Assembly (NCBI GenBank): GCA_051294905.1
Contig: CM119374.1
Coordinates: 9,362,001 to 9,426,000 of the forward strand
DNA: 64,000 bases
Source of the DNA: Botryllus schlosseri
Lineage: Eukaryota
Direction: 5' to 3'
The notes under the pieces were generated by a model. The model was not told the DNA's origin. It did no database searches and was given only the letters and a program-made list of their open reading frames with translations. This document shows positions 7,098 through 62,640 of the stretch, one piece after another. How positions within the stretch are numbered: the first letter of the stretch is position 1; the number at the start of each line of letters is the position of its first letter. Position numbers and translations under genes: made by a program.

Positions 7098-7223
7098 ATC
7101 TAGATGATACGAGTTCCCCAAATATAAATTACAGGCGTATGTGGTGACACCATTGATAGTATAAATGGTGTAGCTAACTTCATTGTGGAAACCGTTCTCT
7201 ATACTGCAGTCTCTTTGAAATAT

Positions 7224-7418
7224 TCAAATTTCTTTTTCGCAAATTATTCCGTGAACAGCGTATGTTCGCACCCAATTGAACACGCCGAAATTTGCACCAC
7301 TTCTTCGTGCTGCCAAAAACATTTTTATATGTGTAGACGTGGATTTCGGGTAAGTTGGATGCCAGTGAAATCCACTTGTATCCACCTCGGTTCCAGATCG
7401 GTAGATTACGGTAGACGT
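7224..7418 (-). CDS. Collectin-like exon 4: C-terminal half of the CTLD
   Basis: Acceptor TTTTTGACAG; TSTVIYRSGTEVDTSGFHWHPTYPK...HGIICEKEI*. Same length (195 nt) as, and similar sequence to, the paralogous exon 21588-21782. Missed by the ORF track because it has no start codon. Confidence 0.88.
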   Translation of the reverse strand, partial: TSTVIYRSGTEVDTSGFHWHPTYPKSTSTHIKMFLAARRSGANFGVFNWVRTYAVHGIICEKEI

Positions 7419-10400
7419 CTGTCAAAAATAACGGATGATAGCTTTCCGAATATCACACGCATATTTTTCCCAATACAGAATCAACTCCAATCTAATCCTT
7501 CTAATCAAATATCTGCTAGAATAATTTCCAGTCAGTCAAGAGCAGTAGGCTACGCCACGTGAAAAGATATTGAAATAATTCAGAGTATTCCACTTTGTTC
7601 ATTGTACTTGTATATATCGCCTATCCCATTTTAGAAATGGTAAATAGAGTATGTAATTTTCAGAGTCCGTGAATACCTGTGCCAACGGCAAATAAATCCA
7701 CGGATTACATCGTTTGAGAGAAACTGACATAAGCACCAGCAGAATCCAACCAAACCCGAACCCTAACCCAATCTTAAAAGGGCACTGCACTCTAAAAATG
7801 ATGTGGTCTCAAAATGAAGGCAAACGAAAGAAAACTTTTGGCCGCAGCCGTTTTCTTCAGAACGCCACCGTATAATAGGGCTCTTCAAAAATGACTTTTT
7901 TTCTCAAATCGTACTGGCTACTTGATAAAATTGTTAAGTTACCTAATTTAAGCCTACACACAAAATTTGGTTCAATTCCAGCCAGTAACCGCTTTGCTAC
8001 AGGAGAAGAAAGTTTCTATTTATTATATAAAAATAAATGGTAAAAAATTTGGAAATTTTCTGTTTACCCCATGAAAGTGTTAGGCTGTCTATACAAACGA
8101 TGCTCACCAAATTTGGTTCATTTCCAACCAGTGGAAGCGGGGTTATTGCCATCGAAAAAATTTGGATTTGAATAAAATAGTATTTACGGTGACCGATTCT
8201 TTCTTCATTTATTATAGTTGTGCTCACCGTAAATACTATTTTATCAAAATCCAAATTTTTCGACAGCAATAACTCCGCTTCCACTGGTTGGAAATGAACC
8301 AAATTTGGTGAGCATCGTTTGTATAGACAGCCTAACACTTTCATGGGGTAAACAGAAAATTTCCAAATTTTTTACCATTTATTTTTATATAACAAATAGA
8401 AACTTTCTTCTCCTGCAGCAAAGCGGTTACTGGCTGGAATTAGACCAAATTTTGTGTGTAGGCTTAAATTAGGTAACCTAACAATTTTATCAAGTAGCCA
8501 GTACGATTTGAGAAAAAAAGTCATTTTTGAAGAGCCCTACCGTATAATGGAGCTGTATTGTATTGAAATTTCCGCAGATGCATCACGCTCCAGCAGTCAC
8601 GCAGAGATCGATTGAGATCGCATCATTTTTAGAGTGCAGTGCCACTGTAACTCATAGCAAAACTTGAATCAAACTCTAAAGACGAACAGGCGCTTACTGA
8701 ACCCGACGCTAAACTACTTTATTATTAAAATCGCTGTTTGAATGTGTCGCAATTACGGCATTAACTATTTCTAGACAGTAGCCCTAATGAATGAATCAAA
8801 ATTTGACATGGCTCACTCATATGAAGCTCGCTAATTTGGCATTAGATATTACTCTTATGAAGCTCGCTAATTTGACATTAGATATTATGACTGAAACGTT
8901 ATTAAGAAGTGGATAATTTGAAACGCACTGTTTTGAAACCGGCTGTTTCACCGGAATGCCATTTTTATGACAATACATCCTTGTGCATCAGGTTTTGTAG
9001 GTTTAAAGGTCTTCTTCGTAGTGAACATTCTACAATTACTGAACCTTTTAGCGGGGTTCGAAACATAGAACACAGTGGACGGCACAATAGATTTGAGTAT
9101 CTGTTTCGAGGGGCCCCCAGATTACCGAAACTTTTGAACCGCTTGCCTTAGTGGCGCAGTGACGGGCCTCACTAACTTGGCGGGTTCCGGTACTTCGTAT
9201 ATGATCAATTGATCAGTATGATCAGGGAATAGCATCGTCGACCTGCGTCGTCTGATATAGCAGCTATAGGAATGGTGTGAACGTGAGGTTCAGGTTTTCG
9301 TTCTGTCTGTGAACCTCGGAAATTTATAGGTTCACGTTCAAAAACGAACCTTGGTAGGTTCTGCACTGTGAACCTTTTTCATGTATTACAATTTTCACTT
9401 CATTATAACATCTTTGGATGAAATTTATTGCATTTCAACTTCAACTGCGGACCACTCTATGCATGGCGCTGGCAGCATAAAAAATCAACACTAAACGACC
9501 ATGCACCTTGACAATCTCTAAAGTTTACTTGTTTTGTTACAAACGTTTGCTCGAAATATCCAGCTTTCCATTTGTGAATATTTCTCTCTGCTGGTGAGCA
9601 TGACCCGCAATCACACAACATCGAGAGCGAAATACGCGACATGTAGTCAGCGAATGATGCTTATTCAACCAATCAATGAAATTATTACCGTTTGGCTGAT
9701 GTATAAAAATCTATCTTGCGTACGGGGTCAATCTTGACTTCAATGGGGTAATATAGGTAGCAAGTATAGAAATCCGGTTTACACTCTGCTCAATGTCAAC
9801 GTAGCAATATTCAGACACCGAATACATTGTCCGGTCTGGCCTACCGATAAGGCGTATGCTTATATTCACTTGCAAGTCCTCGTCGAAATTATTGGTAAAG
9901 TGACGGAAGATATTGATTTTATGGGATTATTATATCATTTGATTGCCCCAGATGATACATCTGGCGAAGTTTAAGACGTCAATATGTACTACAGCATTGT
10001 GCCATTATGGGGCCCGAGTCGTTGATAGGTATCGTGTACATTAATATTATAGATAGTAGGGATGGTGTGAACCTCTGAAAGGTTCAGGTTCGTGTGAACG
10101 CGAACCTTTTTGAAAGGTTCTGTGTGAACGCGAACGTGAACCTCATGACGTCACGCGACGGATATTGGCAGTTCCCACCCTATATTTCAGTGAAGTGATA
10201 GCCTATATTAATGTACACGATACGGAGCGACGACTCAGGCCACATAATTCCACAATGCTGAAGTACATATTGACGTTTTAAACGTCGCTAAATGTGTCAA
10301 CTGGGGCAATCAAATGATTTAATAATCCCATAAAGTCAATATCTTCCGTTGCTTTGCCAAGAATTTCGACGCGGCCTTGCAAGCAAATATAAGCTTACGC

Positions 10401-12960
10401 GTTAGCGGTCACGGCCAGACTAGACGATGTATTCGGCGTCTGAGTATTTCTACGTTAATATTGAGCAGATTTGGTTTTTATGATACAGTAAACATATGAC
10501 CCCGCACGCTTGTTAGATTTTTTACATCAGACAATGATATCAATCTCATTGATTGGTTGAATGAGCCTCATTCGCTCACTAAATGTAGTGTATTTCGCTC
10601 TTGATGTTGTGTGATTGCGGGTCAAGCTCACGGCAGAGAGTCATTAAATATATTCACAAACGGAAAGCTGGATATTTCGAGCAAACTTTTGTAACAAAGC
10701 AAGTGAAATTTTTGAGATTGTCAAGGTGCATGCTCGTTTAGTGTTGATTTTTTGTATGCTGCCATCGTCGTGCATAGAGTGGCCCACAGTTGAAAAGTAA
10801 TACATTTCAACCAATGATGTTATAATGAAGTGAAAATTGTAATATATGAAAAAGGTTCACAGTGCAGAACCTCCCAAGGTTCGTTTGTGAACGTGAACCT
10901 CTAAATTTCAGAGGTTCACACATAGAACGCGAACGTGAACCTCACGTTCACACCATCCCTAATAGATAGGCTCTCACTTTACTGAAATGTACGGTTGGAA
11001 TTAACAATATGACGTCACGTGATGTCATGATGTTCACGTTGGCGTTGATACGAACCTGAACCATTTAAAGGTTTACACCATCCCTAATAGCAGCCGGTTG
11101 ACTATTGTGCTCGGACACCTGCCGTGGACTCTCCCAAGTTCGTGGTAGGGTTTAAGAAACATATGGCCTAATTTGGGAATATTCTACGTTGATATATTTG
11201 TAAGCTATAGTCACGAGTAATATGAAATCAAAGCTCTTTGATTTCGGTTGCCGCCATGAGCGCAACCACGGCACGTGATATCACCAAACTTTATGTTTGA
11301 GCCGTATAGTTACGCCATCAACATTGTAGGATGATCTCTTTATAATTTTTTGCCCTATCTGATTTATGTTCCGAAGAAGCACTATTCTTACCGCATGACC
11401 AAGTTGTAGAAATATTTGAAAGGTTGAAACTAGGACTGCATTTAAAATAAAAATCAAGTTAAAACAAACATGTTCAAAACGTCGCCCTTGTTTAAAACAT
11501 TGTTTTGGTCATGTAATCCCAGTTGCAGAAGGTCGTTTATAGATATAACGGTATGCGACTATACCAATGGCTTGTATTCCATTCCAATAACGAACTCGGC
11601 GTACTCCAGAGCACGTGGCATTTTCCTGAGAGCAAAGTCGTGTAAAGCGGATTGTTGAGGTTGATCACGAATTTCTGCCAGTAAAGCCCCGCTTCTCGCA
11701 CATTCTGCAACAGCTTGATCGAAATTTGTATGCCTTGACGATGACACTTGTTGAGATATGGTGAAACATTTGCCAGCATTAGGCAACCCGCCTTGTCTAA
11801 TGCAGTCAGACTCTGCAACGCAAGCATATTCAAGGGCGTTGTTCGTGAGCATCGATGACAGAAGATGGTATGCTAACATTGCTAAGTATGGTTATTTAAG
11901 CTTTCCTCGATGGAGCTGTAATGAATTGAAATTGTGAAATGTATGGCGTAGGGCAGTGACTCTAAACCTTTTTTAAACAAGCCTCCTTTATGATAGTGAA
12001 AATTTTCGAGCCCCCCTTATCGTCATATCACAAAATCCAACCGGGATGCTAGCAAACCCAACAGATTGTTTGACTACATGGAAGGCTATGATGGTCATGG
12101 GGTAATTAAAAAATATGAAATTCGGTCTATATATAGAGAAACATGCGTGAATTGGAGGTAAATCGCGAAGAGTCGGCTGCTTCTTCGGGCCCTCTTCAGA
12201 TGATTTCACGCCCCCAAGGTTGGAAACCGCTGGCGTTGGGTGTGGCGACAGTTCGTCTCAAAATGTCCTCCGAGGACGCCTAAATGTCCTCCTTTTGGAA
12301 ATTCGTCCTATTTCATACCTTTGAAAGCCAGGCTAATTCGATGACATAGCTGGATGCAACAAAACTCCGAGACGTTCTTTAATGGGCCGGGGATGATGAC
12401 GCACATAATCTTTGACATATGGATTACTAATGGAATGCACACTTAATCATATTCATATATAAAATATTCCTTGTTTGATTAATATTTTTTAAATTTAGAA
12501 TTGAAATTTTAGGTCAATGCTACTTATTATAATCAGACTAATAAATTTATGTCATACCTGACAACAAAACTGACAGATTTCTTGTAATTTCATCAATTGT
12601 ATTCTTTGTTTTCGCCAGCGCTAGAATTGAATCATGGTTGTCATTCGTTAAATAAATTCGGAACAATCTAATGATAAATATAATCTTACAATTTTCAACC
12701 TTCGCATCAATAGCGTCATTAATGATATCGTAGTCGACTGTTGCGGATGGCCCAGCATCGCCCGGCAATCCTCTTAATCCAGGAAAGCCACGTGGTCCCA
12801 TCTTGCCAGGGGGTCCTTGATGGGGTCTGATAGCAGGTGATTCGCTTTCAACGAAAACATCTGCGATGGTCTTGCAGACAAAATGTTGTTGGTTGCTCAA
12901 AGCTAAGCGCAAGCTAATTGATGCGACCAGGAAAAATCTCCAGATGAATATTGACATCAT
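7224..12960 (-). CDS. Collectin-like secreted protein, 4 coding exons, about 258 aa: signal peptide + Cys + 8 Gly-X-Y + neck + non-canonical CTLD
   Basis: Exons 12960-12690, 12620-12558, 11812-11565 and 7418-7224 have GT-AG boundaries with compatible phases (1,1,0) and give one open frame: MMSIFIWRFFLVASISLRLALS...QGPPGKMGPRGFPGLRGLPGDAGPS...SLAKTKNTIDEITRNLSVLLS-ESDC...GKCF...AVAECARSGALLAEIRD...FVIGMEY...WHPTYP...IICEKEI*. Confidence 0.9.
7778..8646. mobile_element. Kolobok-like TIR MITE (host of the foldback element)
   Basis: TIR GGCACTGCACTCTAAAAATGATG / CATCATTTTTAGAGTGCAGTGCC; flanked by TTAA (7774-7777) and GTAA (8647-8650); purine-purine start. The superfamily call is inference. Confidence 0.6.
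7876..8539. mobile_element. 664-bp foldback (almost fully palindromic) element
   Basis: Arms 7876-8192 and 8224-8539 are reverse complements with few mismatches; 31-nt loop; termini TAGGGCTCTTC; perfect 8-bp TSD CCGTATAA. Confidence 0.95.
9265..11086. mobile_element. Ac-type hAT non-autonomous element (TAGGGATGGTGTGAAC family), split by a second copy of itself
   Basis: Ends TAGGAATGGTGTGAAC / GTTTACACCATCCCTA; TSD ATAGCAGC (9257-9264, 11087-11094) with a 2-nt offset at the left end. Confidence 0.85.
10057..10961. mobile_element. Ac-type hAT non-autonomous element, complete 905-bp copy in opposite orientation to its host
   Basis: TIR TAGGGATGGTGTGAAC; perfect TSD ATAGATAG (10049-10056, 10962-10969); GTGAAC/GAACC subterminal arrays. 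Confidence 0.92.
11565..11812 (-). CDS. Collectin-like exon 3: N-terminal half of the CTLD
   Basis: Acceptor GTTGCAG and donor GTATAG; long-form Cys pair (DC...KCF), AxxxC...GAxLAxI, and a WIGL-equivalent FVIGM. Confidence 0.9.
12558..12620 (-). CDS. Collectin-like exon 2: coiled-coil neck
   Basis: Acceptor TTCTAG and donor G|GTATGA; 63 nt, phase 1-1; heptad-like LAKTKNTIDEITRNLSVLLS; 69-nt upstream intron. Confidence 0.8.
12690..12960 (-). CDS. Collectin-like exon 1: signal peptide, N-terminal Cys, collagen segment
   Basis: Hydrophobic leader; GXY x8 at 12745-12816; donor T|GTAAG at 12689. Confidence 0.9.
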
Positions 12961-13100
12961 TAACAAACTCTGTAATATAGAACACATGTCAGCCGATGGA
13001 TCATGCTTGTCATCGACCTTTTTGTGATTTCATAAAGCTAAGGAATGATATCCAACTTTCCAATTATGAATATATTTCGAGACTTTCTACTGTGAACTTA

Positions 13101-14056
13101 ACCCTCAACCACACAATATAAAGAGCTAAATACGCTTCATGTAGGTAGTCAGTGAGTGATGCGAATTCAACCAATCAACGAAATTGCTACAAAGAATACA
13201 TCGTTGTCTAATGTAAACAATCTAGCATGCGTACGGGATCCATCTTGATTTAATATATCTATTGTATCATAAAAACCAAATCCCTGCGATTGGAGTGTTG
13301 CTTACTGCATAACTTGTCAATGGTGTAAGATCCATAGCAAGTATCGAAACCCGTTTAACACTCTACCTCAATATCAACTTAGACAGCCGACGAATACATC
13401 GTCCGGTCAGTGACGAGATAGCGCAGTGGTATAATCCGCGGCTGCAACACCTTTGGGTGCGGGTTCGAGTCCGACCGAGGTCGACTTCCGGATTCCGATA
13501 CCTATGTGTTGGAGGTTTACCTAGGCTCCTCCTCGCCACCTCATCCGCGCCGGCGGTGTCTTACAAAAGCCTAGAGGTGGCCGTGCTGTAAGTCGGCAGT
13601 TCCGGAAAATAAAAAGAATATCGGCCTTGTGTAAATGACCATAGTAGTTGACAAACACCATGAATACCCCCAAAAACAAACAAACAAACAAACATTGTCC
13701 GGTATGGTCTGGACCCTTACTTAATGCGTAAGCTTTTATTCCTTTCAAGTCCCCAGTCGAAATTGTTGGCAAAGCGACGGAAGATAGTGATTTTATGGGA
13801 ATATTATATCATTTGATTGCCGTAGTTGATAACTTTGGTGACGTTTAAAAGTCAGCATGTACTTCAGCATTGTGGCATAAAGTGCCCTGAGTCTTCACCA
13901 GGCATTGTGTACATTTCACTGAAATATAGAGTTGGAATGGAAAGAGCAATATCACGTCACGTGACGTCATAGGTTCACGTTCGCGTTCACACATAACTTT
14001 CCAAAAGGTTCGCGTTCACACGAACCTGAAACTTCCATGGGTTCACACTGTCCCCA
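13101..14056. mobile_element. Truncated copy of the TAGGGATG family just upstream of the collectin-like gene
   Basis: Internal sequence and one GTTCACAC-rich end match the other copies; the other end is missing; interrupted by a SINE. Confidence 0.8.
13408..13691 (+). mobile_element. tRNA-derived SINE, family 1
   Basis: A box TAGCGCAGTGG, B box GGTTCGAGTCC, (AAAC)n tail; TSD ACAT(C/T)GTCCGGT. The empty site AATACATTGTCCGGT is visible in the sister host copy at about 9821-9835. Confidence 0.9.
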
Positions 14057-15467
14057 GTATCCTGTAAAGTCGGACTGAAGTGTATTTGATGTTGGATATG
14101 GCACTGTGGTAGGTCATGTTATAGTAACATAAAATAACGCTAATTGCAAACTAGATCAATTATCAACTTCTGGTGGAAATATAGGGCACCCTCACCAAGA
14201 ATCCCAAAGAATCGCGGATTTAGTGCAGCGCATTTATGCGTAAAGTCAGCCTGCCATCACACTATTACTTATATGTATAGACTATATTACTTTGTTGAAG
14301 TGCAGAAAGAACGTCTTTACATGTTACAGGTTGGGTTGTCGTAAAAATCACTTTGTTATTCACTCTGTCGTAACACTTACTGACTGCAGCTATCAATTCA
14401 TTATCAAAGCGGGTGGAAATAGGAGCAGTCGATGTTTGATGGCATAGGCGTCGAGTTACGGGGTGGCGGCCACCCCATACAGTTAGATTAAACGCCCGCC
14501 GTCTGCGATTTTAAATCATCAGCGCTGTCAATTAGCGAGTCCGTGATAGCACGTAAATGCCAACTGTTTACCATTAACGGATACGAGCGCGAATAATTGA
14601 ATACGCAGCTTCGTCGACGACACGAACTAGTGCTTTTGCGCCTCAATGAATTATAATCCGTGATTAGTAATCAGACAATCGAAGCACCCTCGTTTACGAC
14701 GTCGATTTCGACACGCATGCGCTGAGAAACACCACCTTCTCTCTCGACAAGACGAGCGAATTGACGTTCTCCTTCTCTTAATTAAATTGTATTTGCGACC
14801 ATATTCGTTCACAAAATAATTCTGGAGGTAGTTCCGTGATAGTATCTTTAATTGGAGGCTTGGAGCGCGAAATAGGACAGTGTGTTTGTGCATGCCTGCG
14901 AATTGAAAGTCATTCCTGCGCAAAGTGCGCATATTTATTAGTCTAACAAGGCTTTGCCAAATTTGATCGGAAAATGTAACAATGCAGCTCAATCGTCGTT
15001 ATAATAGGCAAACAATTGTCGCAATGTCAGACGTTGAACCCCATTGTGCTGTACGCAAGTTGAGGAATCACTGATTAGATGCGCGCTTTCTCGTTAGCTA
15101 TCATCTGTAGGCTACTAATCCTTGTATTGTGCAGAACAGAGCGTAGAATTACGTTGCCAAATATTGATGCAACACGAGTCGACGCGCAAATTCTGAATTT
15201 ATTCGACTAGTTTGAACGGGAACCTTATATGTTCCAATAAATTTCATTGCTGGACGGACTTTATCGAGCGCAACCATATCGCGGCTCGAATTTCAAACCT
15301 TTGGGATATGTATTTCTATTGGTAAGTTTGCGCCATGCGCCCATATTGCTCTTACTGCAATAACACGTGGTTGATTAAAAGCGCACCATTTTACTGCTGA
15401 ACGGAGCCTACGTATAGGCCGAAGGCCCCGGCTGATATTACCCAGCGCGTTGTCGGCATTAAAACCC

Positions 15468-21587: not shown

Positions 21588-23688
21588 TCAAATTTCTTTT
21601 TCGCAGACTACTCCGTTAGCAGCGTGTGACGGTGTATAATTGAATTTGCCGAAATTAGAACCACTTCTTCGAACTGCCAAGAAAACAGATTTATGTTGAG
21701 GATTAGAAGTCGGGTAACCGGGATGCCAGTGAAATTGACTTTTATCCATCTTCGTTCCAGAACTGTATAGCATGGTGGAAGTCTGTCAAAAAACAAATGA
21801 TATAAATTCGAATATCACCAAAATATTCTGTATGAGACGCAATCAAGTCCGATCAAATCGATAAGAGAATTCACTCCAACCACGTATAATCTAATGCAAC
21901 AGTGGCTCCTGTCTTTTCGTTTTATTTTCAGAATCACATTACCCCAACACATTTGTCAATGGAAAATAAATCTGCGAGTTAAAATGTTGAGTAAAACTGA
22001 CAAATGCTCTAGTACAGTGATTCGTAATCATTTTCCTCATACGCACCTTTTCTATTTGTAAATAGGAACAGGAAACGAAATTCCAAGTAATTGCAATGCA
22101 CGACTCGGGTGGAGCACCACTGCATTATATGACTCGTGCACAACAGTTACTCTTGACGAATATCATAAATTATTCTCGTATAGGTACATTTGTAAGTTCG
22201 CGGACACACAAAACACATTCCGTGAACTCACTTCTTGAGTCCTCTGGCACGGGGTTGGGTTACATGGTTTATTTTACTTTGATGAATTTGGAAGAAAGAA
22301 TCACGATTGAAATAAAAAATAAAAGCTATGTGACTTTGATTGTTGGCAGCAGTGCAGCCATGAGAAGAAGATGCCATCGCATTTATAGACTGATCCGTGC
22401 AGTTACAGCATTGTAATTTGTAGCATGGCTTATTATTAGGGATGGTTTAACCCTCTGAAAGGTTCGGATTCGCGTGAACGCAAACCTTTTTGATAGCTTA
22501 TGTGTGAACGCGAACGTGAACCTCATGCATATTGCTAATTTAAACCCTACATTTCAGTGAAGTGATAGCATATATAGCCTACCTAGCGGCGACTCGAACC
22601 ACATAATGCCACAATGCTAAAGTACATATTGACGTTTTAAACGTCGCCAAATGCATTAACTGGAGCAATTAAATGATCTAATAATCCCATAAAATCGATA
22701 TCTTCCGTCGCTTTGCCAACAATTTCGACGAGGACTTGCAAGGGAATTCAAGCTTACGCCTTAACGGTCTAGGCCAGACCGCACAATGTATTCGGGGTCT
22801 GAGTATTGATACTTGATATTGAGCAATATTACCCCATTAGCAAGTTATACAGCAGTAGCCTACGCGCCAATCGCATGGATTTGGTTTTCATGATACAATA
22901 AACATATGTAATCAAGATTGATACCGTACGCCTGCTAGAAATTTTACATCAGACAACGATATCCACGTCATTTATTGGTTGAATAAGCATCATTCGCTGA
23001 CTACCTATACACGTAGTGTATTTCGCTCTTGATGTTGTGGGATTGCGGGTCAGGCTCACAGCAGAGAGTCACTATATTCGAGCTAACTTTTGTAACAATG
23101 CAAGTTAAATTTTTTAGATTGTCAAGGTGCATGCTTGTTTAGTGTGGATTTTTTATGCTGCCAGCGCCATGCATACAGTGGCCCGCAGTTGAAATGCAAT
23201 AAATTTCAACCAAACATGTTATAATGAACTTAAAATTGTAATATATGAAAGAGGTTCACAGTGCAGAACCTACCAAGGTGCGTTTGTGAACGTGAACCTC
23301 TAAATTTCTGAGGTTCACACACAGAACGCGAACGTGAATCTCACGTTCACCCCATCCCTACTTATTATCATACGTATCATTGCTTAAAGTCGGTTTTTAT
23401 GCATGCAAACCACTAGCGATATAAAGGCTTGCAACTATACCGATGGGTTATATTCCATTCTAAGACGTAACTCGGCGTAAATGAGGCCAGCCGGCATTTT
23501 CCCGAGAGCAAAATCGTACACATTGTTTTGTTAAGATTGATCATGAATTTCCGCCAATGAAGCTCCGGTTCTCGCACATTCCCTAACAGCGTGTTGCTGG
23601 AAATGTACATCCTTCCTTGATGAGAACTGAGGTATGGTGAAACATTTGCCAGCATCAACCAGTCCGCCTTGTCTCTTGCAGTCAGATT
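21588..23688 (-). pseudogene. Paralogue of the collectin-like gene: only exons 3 and 4 found; premature stop in exon 3
   Basis: Exon 23688-23441 (248 nt, same size as in gene 1) has an in-frame TAA at 23531-23533 where gene 1 has CAA, and FVIGM changed to LRLRM. Exon 21782-21588 is open (TSTMLYSSGTKMDKSQFHWHPGYP...VVCEKEI*). No signal/collagen/neck exons seen between 23.7 and 29.9 kb. Confidence 0.82.
22437..23360. mobile_element. Ac-type hAT non-autonomous element (TAGGGATG family), complete copy
   Basis: Termini TAGGGATGG / CCATCCCTA; perfect TSD CTTATTAT; collinear with 10057-10961. Confidence 0.92.
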
Positions 23689-26086: not shown

Positions 26087-27966
26087 ATCTAGAGCCCTTG
26101 ACACATTGTCGTACCAATTCTTTTCCTGTCTCGCATATAGGCTGTAGTACCCAAAAACCGAACACAGTGAATTCGCATATGCACCAATCATCCGCGGGGG
26201 ATCGCGCAAAGCGCGAAGAATTTTTTGTTGAAAGATATTCAGCTTATATTGCAGACATGTTGAAAGATCGCTCGGTTACGGTCGCGACCAAAAATTGTAC
26301 CCTTCGCGATCTATACTTTAAGAACTCCTGTCCTACTTGGTGTTAACCGTATTGAAATAAAATGAGGAGATTTCGACCGTGTGTTAATGTGTCGCATTAT
26401 TTCACGCACGCTTCACATGTGCACTTTACAATCAAAATAAACTTACACTGATATATTTCACGAGAACAAGGCATATTTGCAGTTCCAGTTTCTTGTTAAC
26501 GCTGCACGGAATTTTGATTGTGTGAGATCGAAGAATGTGACGAAACTTTGGGACTTTGATTAGTGATGCCCAGGCCTGTTTATTTTTGGATATTGGGATT
26601 TATTTTTGGAGAATCTCCAAAAATAAGATTTGAAAACATTCAAAAATAAGCTTTTTTGGATTATGATTTTTCAAGTTTTTAGTGAAATAAACGAGTCAGA
26701 GCAGTGTAAATGCTGTTGAAACAACCAGAAAACTCACAAAAACACGCATAAAAACGGCATGTGTGTGAGGAAGGGGTCTCCGAAACGCTAAAAGTACTTT
26801 TACTGACTGGAAGGATCAGAGGCGTGGCGACAAGGGTTTAAGAGGCGGCATGGTATGAAATCGTGCGAATGCGGTGCTCGTTGGACCTTGTGGCTCAGGT
26901 CGAATACCGCCACCTCTACAACAATCACTTCGTCCACACGTTGATGGGACTGAATGGCTATACATACCTCATACGACTACAGGATTTGGTCCAGGAGATG
27001 AAAAGTACGTGCCCAAGTTTGTTGACACCTGCTGGTCGTCAATTAAGAAAGTGACCACTTGGTTGACTAGACACTAGACTAGAATTATCCCAGAAAAAGT
27101 AACAAATATGCATGATTTTAATCCGCACTAAACCCGCGCCGCGTTCGTCACCCACACTGCAATTTTTTCTGTGCAAATGCGTGCAATCCAAAATGTTGAC
27201 AAGCACTGGTGTAAAGGATAAATTGGAACTGGAGGTTTTCATTTCAACAGAATTCTGGTTCCATCATTGTGATATCGAAACTATTATGGAGCAGATTTAA
27301 CAAATTCAGGTGCTATTTCTGTTAACCGACTGCAGTGTGAGAGATGGGGAAAGAGATTGTTTAGTGGGCAAGTAGTGCATATTTCTTGTAATTACGTGTT
27401 ATCGTGAACTCTGCATATTGCAATGACGGTAAATTTAAAGTTACACAAATCTACCACGAAATAATCAGCTTTATTCTGATTTTCGATTTAATTTTTGTCT
27501 CTCTCAATGTTCGGGTTTCGGTTACGGCAGTTACGGCCGTGCATGGTCACAACCGTAGCGATTTCCATTTATATTATAACGAATTTCAACTCGTTGCTGT
27601 TATCCTATTTCGTCAACATGCATTTGACATTCACGAGCGTATTCAATAGTCGCGATTATGAAATAAGCTTGAAACATGATTTCGCACTATGAATAGACGT
27701 TTGTTAGAATTATGAGATAAACAAAACTTGGCTTTGCACCATCACTGTCGCCATTGTTCCAAATGATATGTTGCTAGTGGCTTGGCTACCTCGAAACGCT
27801 CCCACCGGTTGAAACCACTGGCATAAAGCGTGTCAAAAGAAACCTACACAATGAAAAGTAACAGGAGATAACATAAATCAACAGGCGAGAATGATTAAGT
27901 CGCATGAGACGCTAAACGAAGACCATATGTCATATTGTGATCGGGTATCTCGAGTAGCCTATTTAC

Positions 27967-28879
27967 TAGGGATTGTGTGAACGTGAGTTCCCGTTCGCGT
28001 TCTGTGTGTGAACCTCTGGAATTTGGCGGTTCGCGTTCACAAACGAACCTTGGTAGGTTTTGCACTTTGAACCTCTTTCACTTCATTGTAACGACATTGC
28101 TTGAAATTCTTCGGATTCACACTTCGGACCTCTCTCCGCGTGGCAGCATGAAAAGACATTCAGCACTAAACGAGAATGCACCTTGCCGATTTCAAAAATT
28201 AGTTGTTCGAAAGTTTGCTCGGAATATTCAGCTTTCCATTTGTGAATCTTTAGTGCCTCTCTGGTATGAGTTTTGCCCATAATCACAAAATAACAAGAAC
28301 GAATTGCACTACATGTTGAAAGTTACTGAATTGTGCTTAGTCAACCAGTCAGTTATTTATATCAACAAAATTGATAAGAAGAATGCGTCGGTATCTAATG
28401 CAAGAAAAATCCATCGTTTGTACGAGATCTATCTTGACTTGATATCCTTATTTTATCATAAAAGCAAATTCACCCAATTAGGGTGTTGGCTACTGTAAAA
28501 CTGGTTTGTGAGATAATATCTAGCGCAAGTATAGAAACCGGTGAAGAATACATCTGTCCCGTCTAGCCGAGTCCTCGTCGTAATTGTTATCAAAGCGATT
28601 TTGTGCGAATATTAGAGCATTTGACTGTTCCCGTTAAAACATTAGGTTGCGTTTAAAAAGTAATCACGTACCTCAGCATTGTGGCATATTGTGTCCTAAG
28701 TCATCGCCAGTTATCATGTACAATAACATTACCATATAAGTTTACGGAAATGTAGGGTTGGAATTAGCAGTATGACGTCACGTTACGCCATAGGCTCACG
28801 TTCGCGTCCACACAGAACCTTTCAAAAATGTTTGCGTTCACACGAACCAGAACCTTTCCGGGGTTCGCACCATCCCATA
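27967..28879. mobile_element. Ac-type hAT non-autonomous element (TAGGGATG family), older copy in reverse orientation
   Basis: Ends TAGGGATTGTGTGAAC / GTTCGCACCATCCCATA; degenerate TSD CTATTTAC vs GTATTCAC. Confidence 0.85.
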
Positions 28880-59227: not shown

Positions 59228-59309
59228 GCTGCGATGACCGAGTGGTTAAGGCGTTGGACTTGAAATGCAATGGGATATTCCCGCGCAGGTTCGAGCCCTG
59301 CTCTTAGCG
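59228..59309 (+). pseudogene. tRNA-Ser(TGA)-like gene, probably a pseudogene
   Basis: 82 nt, 6 differences from 62559-62640; mismatches in the acceptor (C:T), D (A:C) and anticodon (G:G) stems; A/B boxes recognisable; TTTTT terminator at 59311. Confidence 0.8.
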
Positions 59310-62558: not shown

Positions 62559-62640
62559 GCTGCGATGGCCGAGTGGTTAAGGCGTTGGACTCGAAATCCA
62601 ATGGGATATTCCCGCGCAGGTTCGAACCCTGCTCGCAGCG
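62559..62640 (+). tRNA. tRNA-Ser(CGA), intact, no intron
   Basis: GCTGCGA/TCGCAGC acceptor stem; TTGGA-CTCGAAA-TCCAA anticodon arm; long variable arm; GGTTCGAACC T-arm; discriminator G. Confidence 0.97.

Follow-up and report, generated by a model that had tools for sequence, protein, structure and literature searches.

A gene for a short-collagen, collectin-like protein lies on the minus strand of a 64-kb stretch of Botryllus schlosseri DNA (contig CM119374.1, positions 9,362,001 to 9,426,000), and "the window" hereafter denotes this whole stretch of 64,000 nucleotides. The gene extends from position 12960 to position 7227, consists of four exons and specifies a product of 258 amino acids that is predicted to be secreted. 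An original prediction had placed here a collectin whose collagen segment carries the docking motif for MASPs, the serine proteases associated with mannose-binding lectin (MBL), and whose lectin domain lacks the canonical sugar site.

The gene and its transcripts

The gene is real and transcribed: All exon–exon joints (3/3) are present in spliced transcript contigs of the runs X1 and X3, which come from two studies and were aligned to positions 7100-13050. These contigs lack the introns and are therefore derived from RNA. The four-exon mRNA that had been predicted is thereby borne out, with every junction spliced in the contigs and every intron bordered by GT and AG. Its parts are as follows:

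12960-12690, minus strand: exon 1, translated from the ATG at 12960; signal peptide, cysteine-containing segment, collagen and start of the neck; joined in the contigs from 12690 to 12620
between 12690 and 12620, minus strand: intron 1, 69 nt, GT..AG
12620-12558, minus strand: exon 2, 63 nt, central part of the helical neck; contigs of X1 and X3 contain the joints 12620/12690 and 11812/12558
between 12558 and 11812, minus strand: intron 2, 745 nt, GT..AG
11812-11565, minus strand: exon 3, last part of the neck and, of the C-type lectin domain, the N-terminal half (cysteines C0, C0' and C1)
11564-7419, minus strand: intron 3, 4.1 kb, GT..AG, full of dispersed repeats with copies elsewhere in the window
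7418-7227, minus strand: exon 4, C-terminal half of the lectin domain, with the final cysteine in ICEKEI
7226-7224, minus strand: stop codon TGA, after an open frame of 258 codons

Exon 1 ends in phase 1 at the donor AAAATT/gtaaga. The joint across intron 3 was aligned in the X3 contig as 11567 to 7419, an alignment shifted by a single mismatched base; exon 3 in truth ends at 11565 and exon 4 begins at 7418. A neighboring gene copy is 91% identical to the locus, and the differing sites separate it from the transcript: The contig that covers exon 3 deviates from the window at 4 sites and the neighbor at 12, of which just 2 are shared with the contig. This makes the transcript an allele of the present gene and not of the neighbor.

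Two other readings of the DNA were rejected. Translation of 12745-12816 on the plus strand is meaningless and gives no collagen, and a direct joining of exon 1 to an acceptor near 11890 conflicts with the spliced contigs, which show the 63-nt exon 2 and a start of exon 3 at 11812.

Domain architecture and predicted fold

As in collectins, a Gly-X-Y domain stands between a cysteine-containing N-terminus and a neck, and the chain ends in a C-type lectin-like domain (CTLD). The elements of the product are located as follows:

12960-12895, minus strand, residues 1-22: predicted signal peptide, ending in ALS before NQQ, with the cleavage site placed by the -3/-1 rule
minus strand, residues 23-48: N-terminal segment with a single cysteine, Cys29
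12876-12874, minus strand: Cys29, the sole cysteine before the collagen (in VCK) and a candidate for an inter-chain or inter-trimer disulfide
12816-12745, minus strand, residues 49-72: collagen segment of 8 uninterrupted Gly-X-Y triplets (GPP GKM GPR GFP GLR GLP GDA GPS)
12810-12793, minus strand: PGKMGP motif, with Lys53 (12804-12802) at the X position of triplet 2
minus strand, residues about 73-113: helical neck, from the end of exon 1 through exon 2 to the start of exon 3
minus strand, residues about 113-258: CTLD, split over exons 3 and 4
7364-7347, minus strand: WHPTYP, exon 4
7352-7344, minus strand: YPK in place of EPN, by alignment to an MBL-like protein of newt
7280-7272, minus strand: FNW in place of WND, by the same alignment

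Read along the minus strand, the hydrophobic leader is followed by NQQHFVCK, by QGPPGKMGPRGFPGLRGLPGDAGPS and by the beginning of the helix (DYD..I), and at least 80% of the 29 paralogous exons compared retain VCK. The eight-triplet collagen and its PGKMGP had been assigned to exactly these positions and are confirmed, on the minus strand; no other run of at least five Gly-X-Y triplets occurs in any frame of the window. The match of exon 1 to the Pfam family Collagen (E=2e-4, 21.5 bits) stays under the cut-off of 27.2 bits because the segment is short. Most paralogues have nine triplets, and in this gene the ninth glycine has become alanine. The claim that the collagen is reduced almost to the docking site alone went too far: Six to seven triplets follow the lysine-bearing triplet, as compared with nine in the newt MBL-like protein, and what the family misses in this comparison is the collagen N-terminal to the lysine site. 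Exon 2 additionally encodes an N-L-S sequon (12579-12571, minus strand), which is kept in the paralogues in which exon 2 was found (TRNLSVL, TRNLSIL, MRNLSTL).

The lectin domains of this gene's product, of six paralogues and of five homologues found in other ascidians were aligned with the newt MBL-like protein, in which the canonical elements read HHGEPNN...GKWND...C. The Ca2+-dependent sugar site of collectins (EPN or QPD together with WND) is absent from the product, as had been predicted, and the domain is more divergent than claimed: Both cysteines of the C2-C3 disulfide are likewise replaced, in this gene as well as in the six paralogues and five homologues, with the cysteines C0, C0', C1 and C4 retained. 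Judged from sequence, canonical sugar binding at Ca2+ site 2 is ruled out by the loss of EPN, WND and the C2-C3 disulfide, which is no proof of a non-carbohydrate ligand.

Pfam matches of single exons are sub-threshold (Lectin_C on exon 3 alone, E=0.024), and the family assignment therefore rests on full-length relatives instead. The product aligns end to end with the database proteins P0043 (3e-41) and P0072 (4e-33), and Lectin_C exceeds the Pfam cut-off in the relatives P0072, P0104, P0044, P0050 and P0023. By family profile, the nearest solved sequences are the CTLDs of DEC-205, PLA2R and the mannose receptor and not the carbohydrate-recognition domains (CRDs) of collectins. These alignments and the models described below make a C-terminal C-type lectin-like fold, as found in collectins, a safe prediction.

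In an AlphaFold2 model of the homologue P0072, which is 32% identical to the product (pLDDT, the per-residue confidence, 84.7), a helix of 43 residues (93-135) precedes the CTLD. The top 50 Foldseek matches of this model are all CTLDs (template modeling scores of 0.62-0.77) and include the neck-plus-CRD trimers of SP-D, SP-A, CL-K1 and tetranectin. A three-copy model of residues 58-273 of P0072 scored 0.46, as compared with 0.22 for the best control, thereby passing a mark that is reached by 21/30 solved homo-pairs and 0/23 single chains; the runs agreed to at least 93% at a pLDDT of at least 85, and the contacts extend along the collagen segment and, in heptad spacing, along the helix. This pass may, however, reflect a memory of solved collectin structures.

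Paralogues, the conserved lysine and relatives in other ascidians

Searches of the B. schlosseri genome (G000) with the exon-1 peptide gave 32 matches at E<1e-4, half of which (16) lie around the window in C4:9.18-9.85 Mb, and the exon-4 peptide gave 56 matches, 24 of them within the same interval. For 26/32 exon-1 matches, a same-strand exon-4 match of their own follows 2-31 kb downstream. The family count that had been proposed earlier thus yields at least 26 loci combining a short collagen with a CTLD of the WHxxYP type, and this repeated architecture, read from paired matches, is real.

Across 29 aligned exon-1 peptides of paralogues, conservation of at least 80% is reached by a leader leucine, Q.H.VCK...D.F, the glycine columns, VDY.R....I and QG.PGKMG; outside QG.PGKMG, all X and Y positions of the collagen fall short of 80%. 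The consensus of this conserved stretch is QG(P/A)PGKMG: Lysine occupies triplet 2 in 24/30 copies and is followed by methionine in 20, and lysine at the X position is rare in the remaining triplets. Different copies use different synonymous codons for Q, G, P, P, G, K and G (CAA/CAG, CCC/CCT/CCG/CCA, AAG/AAA etc.). The conservation of the motif is therefore a sign of selection and not of recent copying, and the lysine site appears to be under purifying selection across the family. With a motif so fixed in position, an objection that the original prediction had raised against itself, namely that PGKxGP might be no commoner here than in random Gly-X-Y segments, falls away. Some copies with a broken motif look decayed, such as L010, which has a Gly-to-Ser replacement in its collagen and a stop in its paired exon 4, and L028, whose collagen is broken. 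In two recent pairs, the ratio of nonsynonymous to synonymous substitution rates is 0.22-0.34 for exon 1 as compared with 0.5-1.0 for the lectin exons, a small sample in which one partner may be a pseudogene.

The near-duplicate mentioned above (L002, G000:C4:9339814-9343074) lies about 33 kb away and is 91% identical over the locus and 96% identical at the amino acid level in exon 1. Its exon-4 match (G000:C4:9335551-9335742) contains a TGA, which could mark a recent pseudogene or a stop that is polymorphic. A second copy within the window, also on the minus strand, consists of an exon-3-like and an exon-4-like piece (23715-23418 and 21859-21585; 72-74% nucleotide identity; WHPGYP at 21728-21711). 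A TAA interrupts its frame at 23533-23531, neither exon 1 nor exon 2 can be detected upstream, and the copy is probably a 5'-truncated pseudogene. Four exon-1 relatives on another chromosome (L029, L030, G000:C1:19.49-19.79 Mb; GPPGKRGAHGEKGDRG, 8 triplets) lack a lectin exon of the WHxxYP type within 35 kb and may carry another head domain.

A profile of exon-3 peptides, run against 1.84 billion representatives, retrieved 243 proteins, 72 of them at E<1e-10. The full-length relatives are all short-collagen or, as P0044 and P0046, collagen-less proteins with the same N-terminus and type of CTLD. Named relatives are a C-type lectin of Clavelina lepadiformis and the Styela clava protein XP_039273844 (P0104), the latter with the automatic names "pulmonary surfactant-associated protein A-like" or "uncharacterized". 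The collagens of the relatives have 5-10 triplets and open with GPPGKRG, GIPGKRGP, GPPGKTG or GPPGRRG: A basic residue, lysine or arginine and usually lysine, is kept at the motif triplet in other ascidians, and the residue that follows varies (R, K, T).

The N-terminal cassette is not confined to lectins. In P0155 and P0157, the same cassette, opening with QGPPGK(K/R)G, is attached to a discoidin domain of the F5/8 type C; the shared parts are the cysteine, the QGPPGK(K/R)G short collagen and the DY.(R/K)I neck, and the discoidin-headed P0155 (L031) and the CTLD-headed P0072 (L032) come from the same sequencing run. This occurrence on two kinds of head is what would be expected of an effector-docking module, and we know of no described class of defense collagens that combines collagen with discoidin. 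Weak exon-1 matches at C2:30323432, C2:30392076 and C10:22637369 of the B. schlosseri genome are followed 2-7 kb downstream, on the same strand, by matches to discoidin exons, which, from match positions only, gives three candidate collagen-plus-discoidin loci:

C2:30323432-30330555: candidate locus, weak matches, positions only
C2:30392076-30399444: candidate locus, weak matches, positions only
C10:22631350-22637503: candidate locus, weak matches, positions only

No match to the discoidin part of P0155 occurs in those loci of this genome that were sampled for sequence. A search with the family profile gave few matches and missed several of its own input sequences, and word-based homologue searches with the exon-1 open reading frame and the N-terminal cassette of P0155 found nothing; blanks in these searches mean little.

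Possible MASP docking, competing explanations and known systems

In the published motif for MASP binding, the lysine is essential, the following proline is dispensable and Xaa is usually aliphatic, with serine tolerated and glutamate not; moreover, three substitutions that create the motif give SP-A near-MBL binding of MASP (PMC2856262, PMC2592599). P-G-K-M-G-P fits this motif with the lysine at X, the methionine being non-polar and not among the residues named there. Reports of MASPs, C3 and Bf from ascidians are widespread (PMC5465252). In the B. schlosseri genome, a candidate MASP locus on the minus strand of G000:C14, known from match positions alone, has Pfam matches to CUB (3479139-3479366), Sushi (3471799-3471957) and Trypsin (3464818-3465090), which are collinear in MASP/C1r-like order within 15 kb. 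CUB, Sushi and Trypsin matches in this order also occur at G000:C15:7.62-7.90 Mb, where the spacing of five CUB matches about 30-80 kb apart suggests a tandem protease cluster.

From these elements the following mechanism can be drawn. The product would be a secreted, trimeric, collectin-like recognition protein in which three chains are held together by a coiled-coil neck and a triple helix of 8-9 triplets, and the upstream cysteine could link chains or trimers. With the proline hydroxylated, Hyp-Gly-Lys-Met-Gly-Pro, where the triple helix begins, would offer its lysine to a CUB domain's Ca2+ site in a MASP-like CUB-EGF-CUB protease, and binding of a target by the divergent C-type lectin heads would trigger the proteolysis of C3. 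The heads, devoid of the canonical Ca2+/sugar site, would evolve faster than the N-terminal cassette, and the at least 26 tandem members would form a repertoire of heads on one effector-docking stalk. We regard such a MASP-docking complement recognition protein, with the lysine in its stalk, as the best-supported reading of the sequence and assign it a probability of about 0.5.

Several observations weigh against this reading. The motif occupies triplets 1-3, right at the N-terminus of the triple helix, a place where fraying is possible, whereas the motif of MBL lies mid-stalk, beyond an interruption. Each chain has one N-terminal cysteine, so that oligomers above trimers are not assured, and it is such oligomers that MASP dimers need. 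The vertebrate motif has an aliphatic residue at the position that is taken here by methionine and in other species by arginine, lysine or threonine. The models of fold and trimer were run on P0072 and not on this protein. In subsamples (6-13%) of the raw-read RNA-seq runs X23 and X24, no reads fell on the exons; this is no proof of silence, and expression in that material is low or tissue-restricted. Finally, the same lysine site of MBL binds the CUB domains of BMP-1/tolloid proteases (PMC5717261), and the lectin GBL of Halocynthia roretzi binds MASP without any collagen, which is therefore not required for MASP binding in ascidians (PMC8605247).

Alternatively, the protein could act as an opsonin or agglutinin that recruits no protease, and Gly-Pro-Pro-Gly-Lys would then serve a haemocyte collectin receptor or the assembly, e.g., the nucleation or registration of the short triple helix next to the cysteine. 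The motif does sit at the helix end, adjoining the assembly region, and the variation of the residue after the lysine between species (M here; R, K, T elsewhere) is in line with a looser requirement; collectin-like proteins of Styela, moreover, are described as secreted in inflammation, in a review that draws no link to a protease (PMC5465252). Structural roles, however, seldom fix a lysine at X, and here every other X and Y position of the helix is free to vary; the exact sequence, besides, is that of a motif with known docking function (PMC2856262). We consider this explanation unlikely, if worth keeping in view.

The lysine motif could also dock a different Ca2+-CUB protein, e.g., a BMP-1/tolloid-like metalloprotease or another CUB-serine protease, with a role in the remodeling of tunic or matrix, in metamorphosis or in coagulation-like reactions. 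MBL requires its Lys55 to bind BMP-1 and mTLL-1 (PMC5717261), many loci of the B. schlosseri genome on C9, C8, C14 and C11 have CUB next to Trypsin and no listed Sushi match, and MASPs have been tied to metamorphosis in ascidians (PMC5465252). Tandem expansion on a large scale, with lectin heads that evolve fast, is, however, more typical of immune recognition, and we hold a partner of this kind to be rather improbable. A chance match of the motif or a functionless, decaying copy, to which one might turn in view of the truncated copy with a stop in the window, the TGA in exon 4 of the 91%-identical neighbor and the blank in the two bulk RNA-seq subsamples, is already largely refuted by the intact frame, the canonical splice sites, the spliced transcripts and the fixed position of the motif with synonymous variation; it is highly improbable.

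Beyond the MASP-docking reading of this single gene, a wider proposal can be put forward tentatively, and it is more doubtful than probable: The signal peptide, the one cysteine, the minimal collagen opening with Gly-Pro-Pro-Gly-Lys and the neck would constitute a lineage-specific ascidian "defense-collagen cassette" that couples swappable, fast-diversifying heads (non-canonical CTLDs in at least 26 tandem genes, discoidin in others) to one CUB-protease partner. If this were true, it would amount to a germline-encoded, expanded repertoire of complement-activating receptors without the canonical Ca2+/sugar site.

Compared with known systems, the product shares its order of parts with vertebrate MBL and CL-K1/CL-11: signal peptide, cysteine-containing N-terminus, collagen, predicted coiled-coil neck and C-terminal CTLD. 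It differs from them in its collagen, which numbers 8-9 triplets instead of about 20, lacks any stretch N-terminal to the motif and is uninterrupted, in having one cysteine, and in a CTLD without EPN/WND and the C2-C3 disulfide, which by profile is no closer to collectin CRDs than to the CTLDs of the mannose-receptor family. The sole named vertebrate match of the family profile, which missed several of its own inputs, is the newt MBL-like protein (E=1e-9). Known from ascidians themselves are MBL-like collectins (Ciona MBL-like, Botryllus MBL and the collectin-like protein of Styela plicata), which belong to the same animal group and have the same architecture as far as review descriptions allow the comparison. 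The Styela clava protein P0104 aligns end to end at 25-27% identity, and GIPGKRGPQ opens its 10-triplet collagen. GBL of Halocynthia roretzi, an ascidian C-type lectin that associates with MASPs and activates C3, has a coiled coil instead of collagen and is likened to the family by description, not by sequence (PMC8605247); no protein named GBL is among the matches of the family's profile searches. Ficolins and C1q likewise combine a common collagen stalk that bears a lysine docking site with varied heads, as the one cassette here combines with CTLD and discoidin; the heads, however, are CTLD or discoidin domains instead of fibrinogen-like or gC1q domains, and the stalk is far shorter.

The original prediction had proposed a complement-triggering recognition protein and the best candidate for an undescribed system in the window. 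The first part is partly supported, by the collectin-like architecture, the selected lysine site, the CTLD without the canonical site and the CUB, Sushi and Trypsin matches in MASP order; the novelty was overstated, as collagen-bearing MBL-like lectins of ascidians are already known (PMC5465252, PMC11312191) and the S. clava homologue is automatically annotated as surfactant protein A-like. The product is probably an ascidian complement sensor of an already recognized kind, as far as sequence comparison can tell. Neither of these two reviews (PMC5465252, PMC11312191) mentions that the lysine site is fixed, that the stalk is minimal, that sugar site and core disulfide are lost throughout the family, how large the tandem family is or that discoidin proteins share the cassette.

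According to a 2024 survey, the role of collagen-bearing MBLs and ficolins of urochordates in complement activation is still unclear (PMC11312191), and GBL, the sole lectin of ascidians for which cooperation with MASP has been shown, lacks collagen (PMC8605247). The family described here offers a testable handle on whether collagenous lectins of urochordates activate complement via MASP: Its stalk comprises little beyond the docking lysine and 6-7 triplets, and dozens of natural head variants are available. A lysine comparison with the species' own MASP would bear on whether lysine-CUB docking predates vertebrates, and the non-canonical heads together with the discoidin-headed siblings would bear on how recognition diversifies on a fixed effector stalk.

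Two further features of the window were noted. The repeats within intron 3 (7700-8700 and 9270-11080) have copies at 13048-14061, 22434-23360 and 27956-28876 (71-84% identity); they reach very high depth in the transcript-contig runs and are probably expressed transposable elements. On the plus strand, two tRNA-Ser genes (59228-59309 and 62559-62640) with the anticodons TGA and CGA lie 3.3 kb apart.

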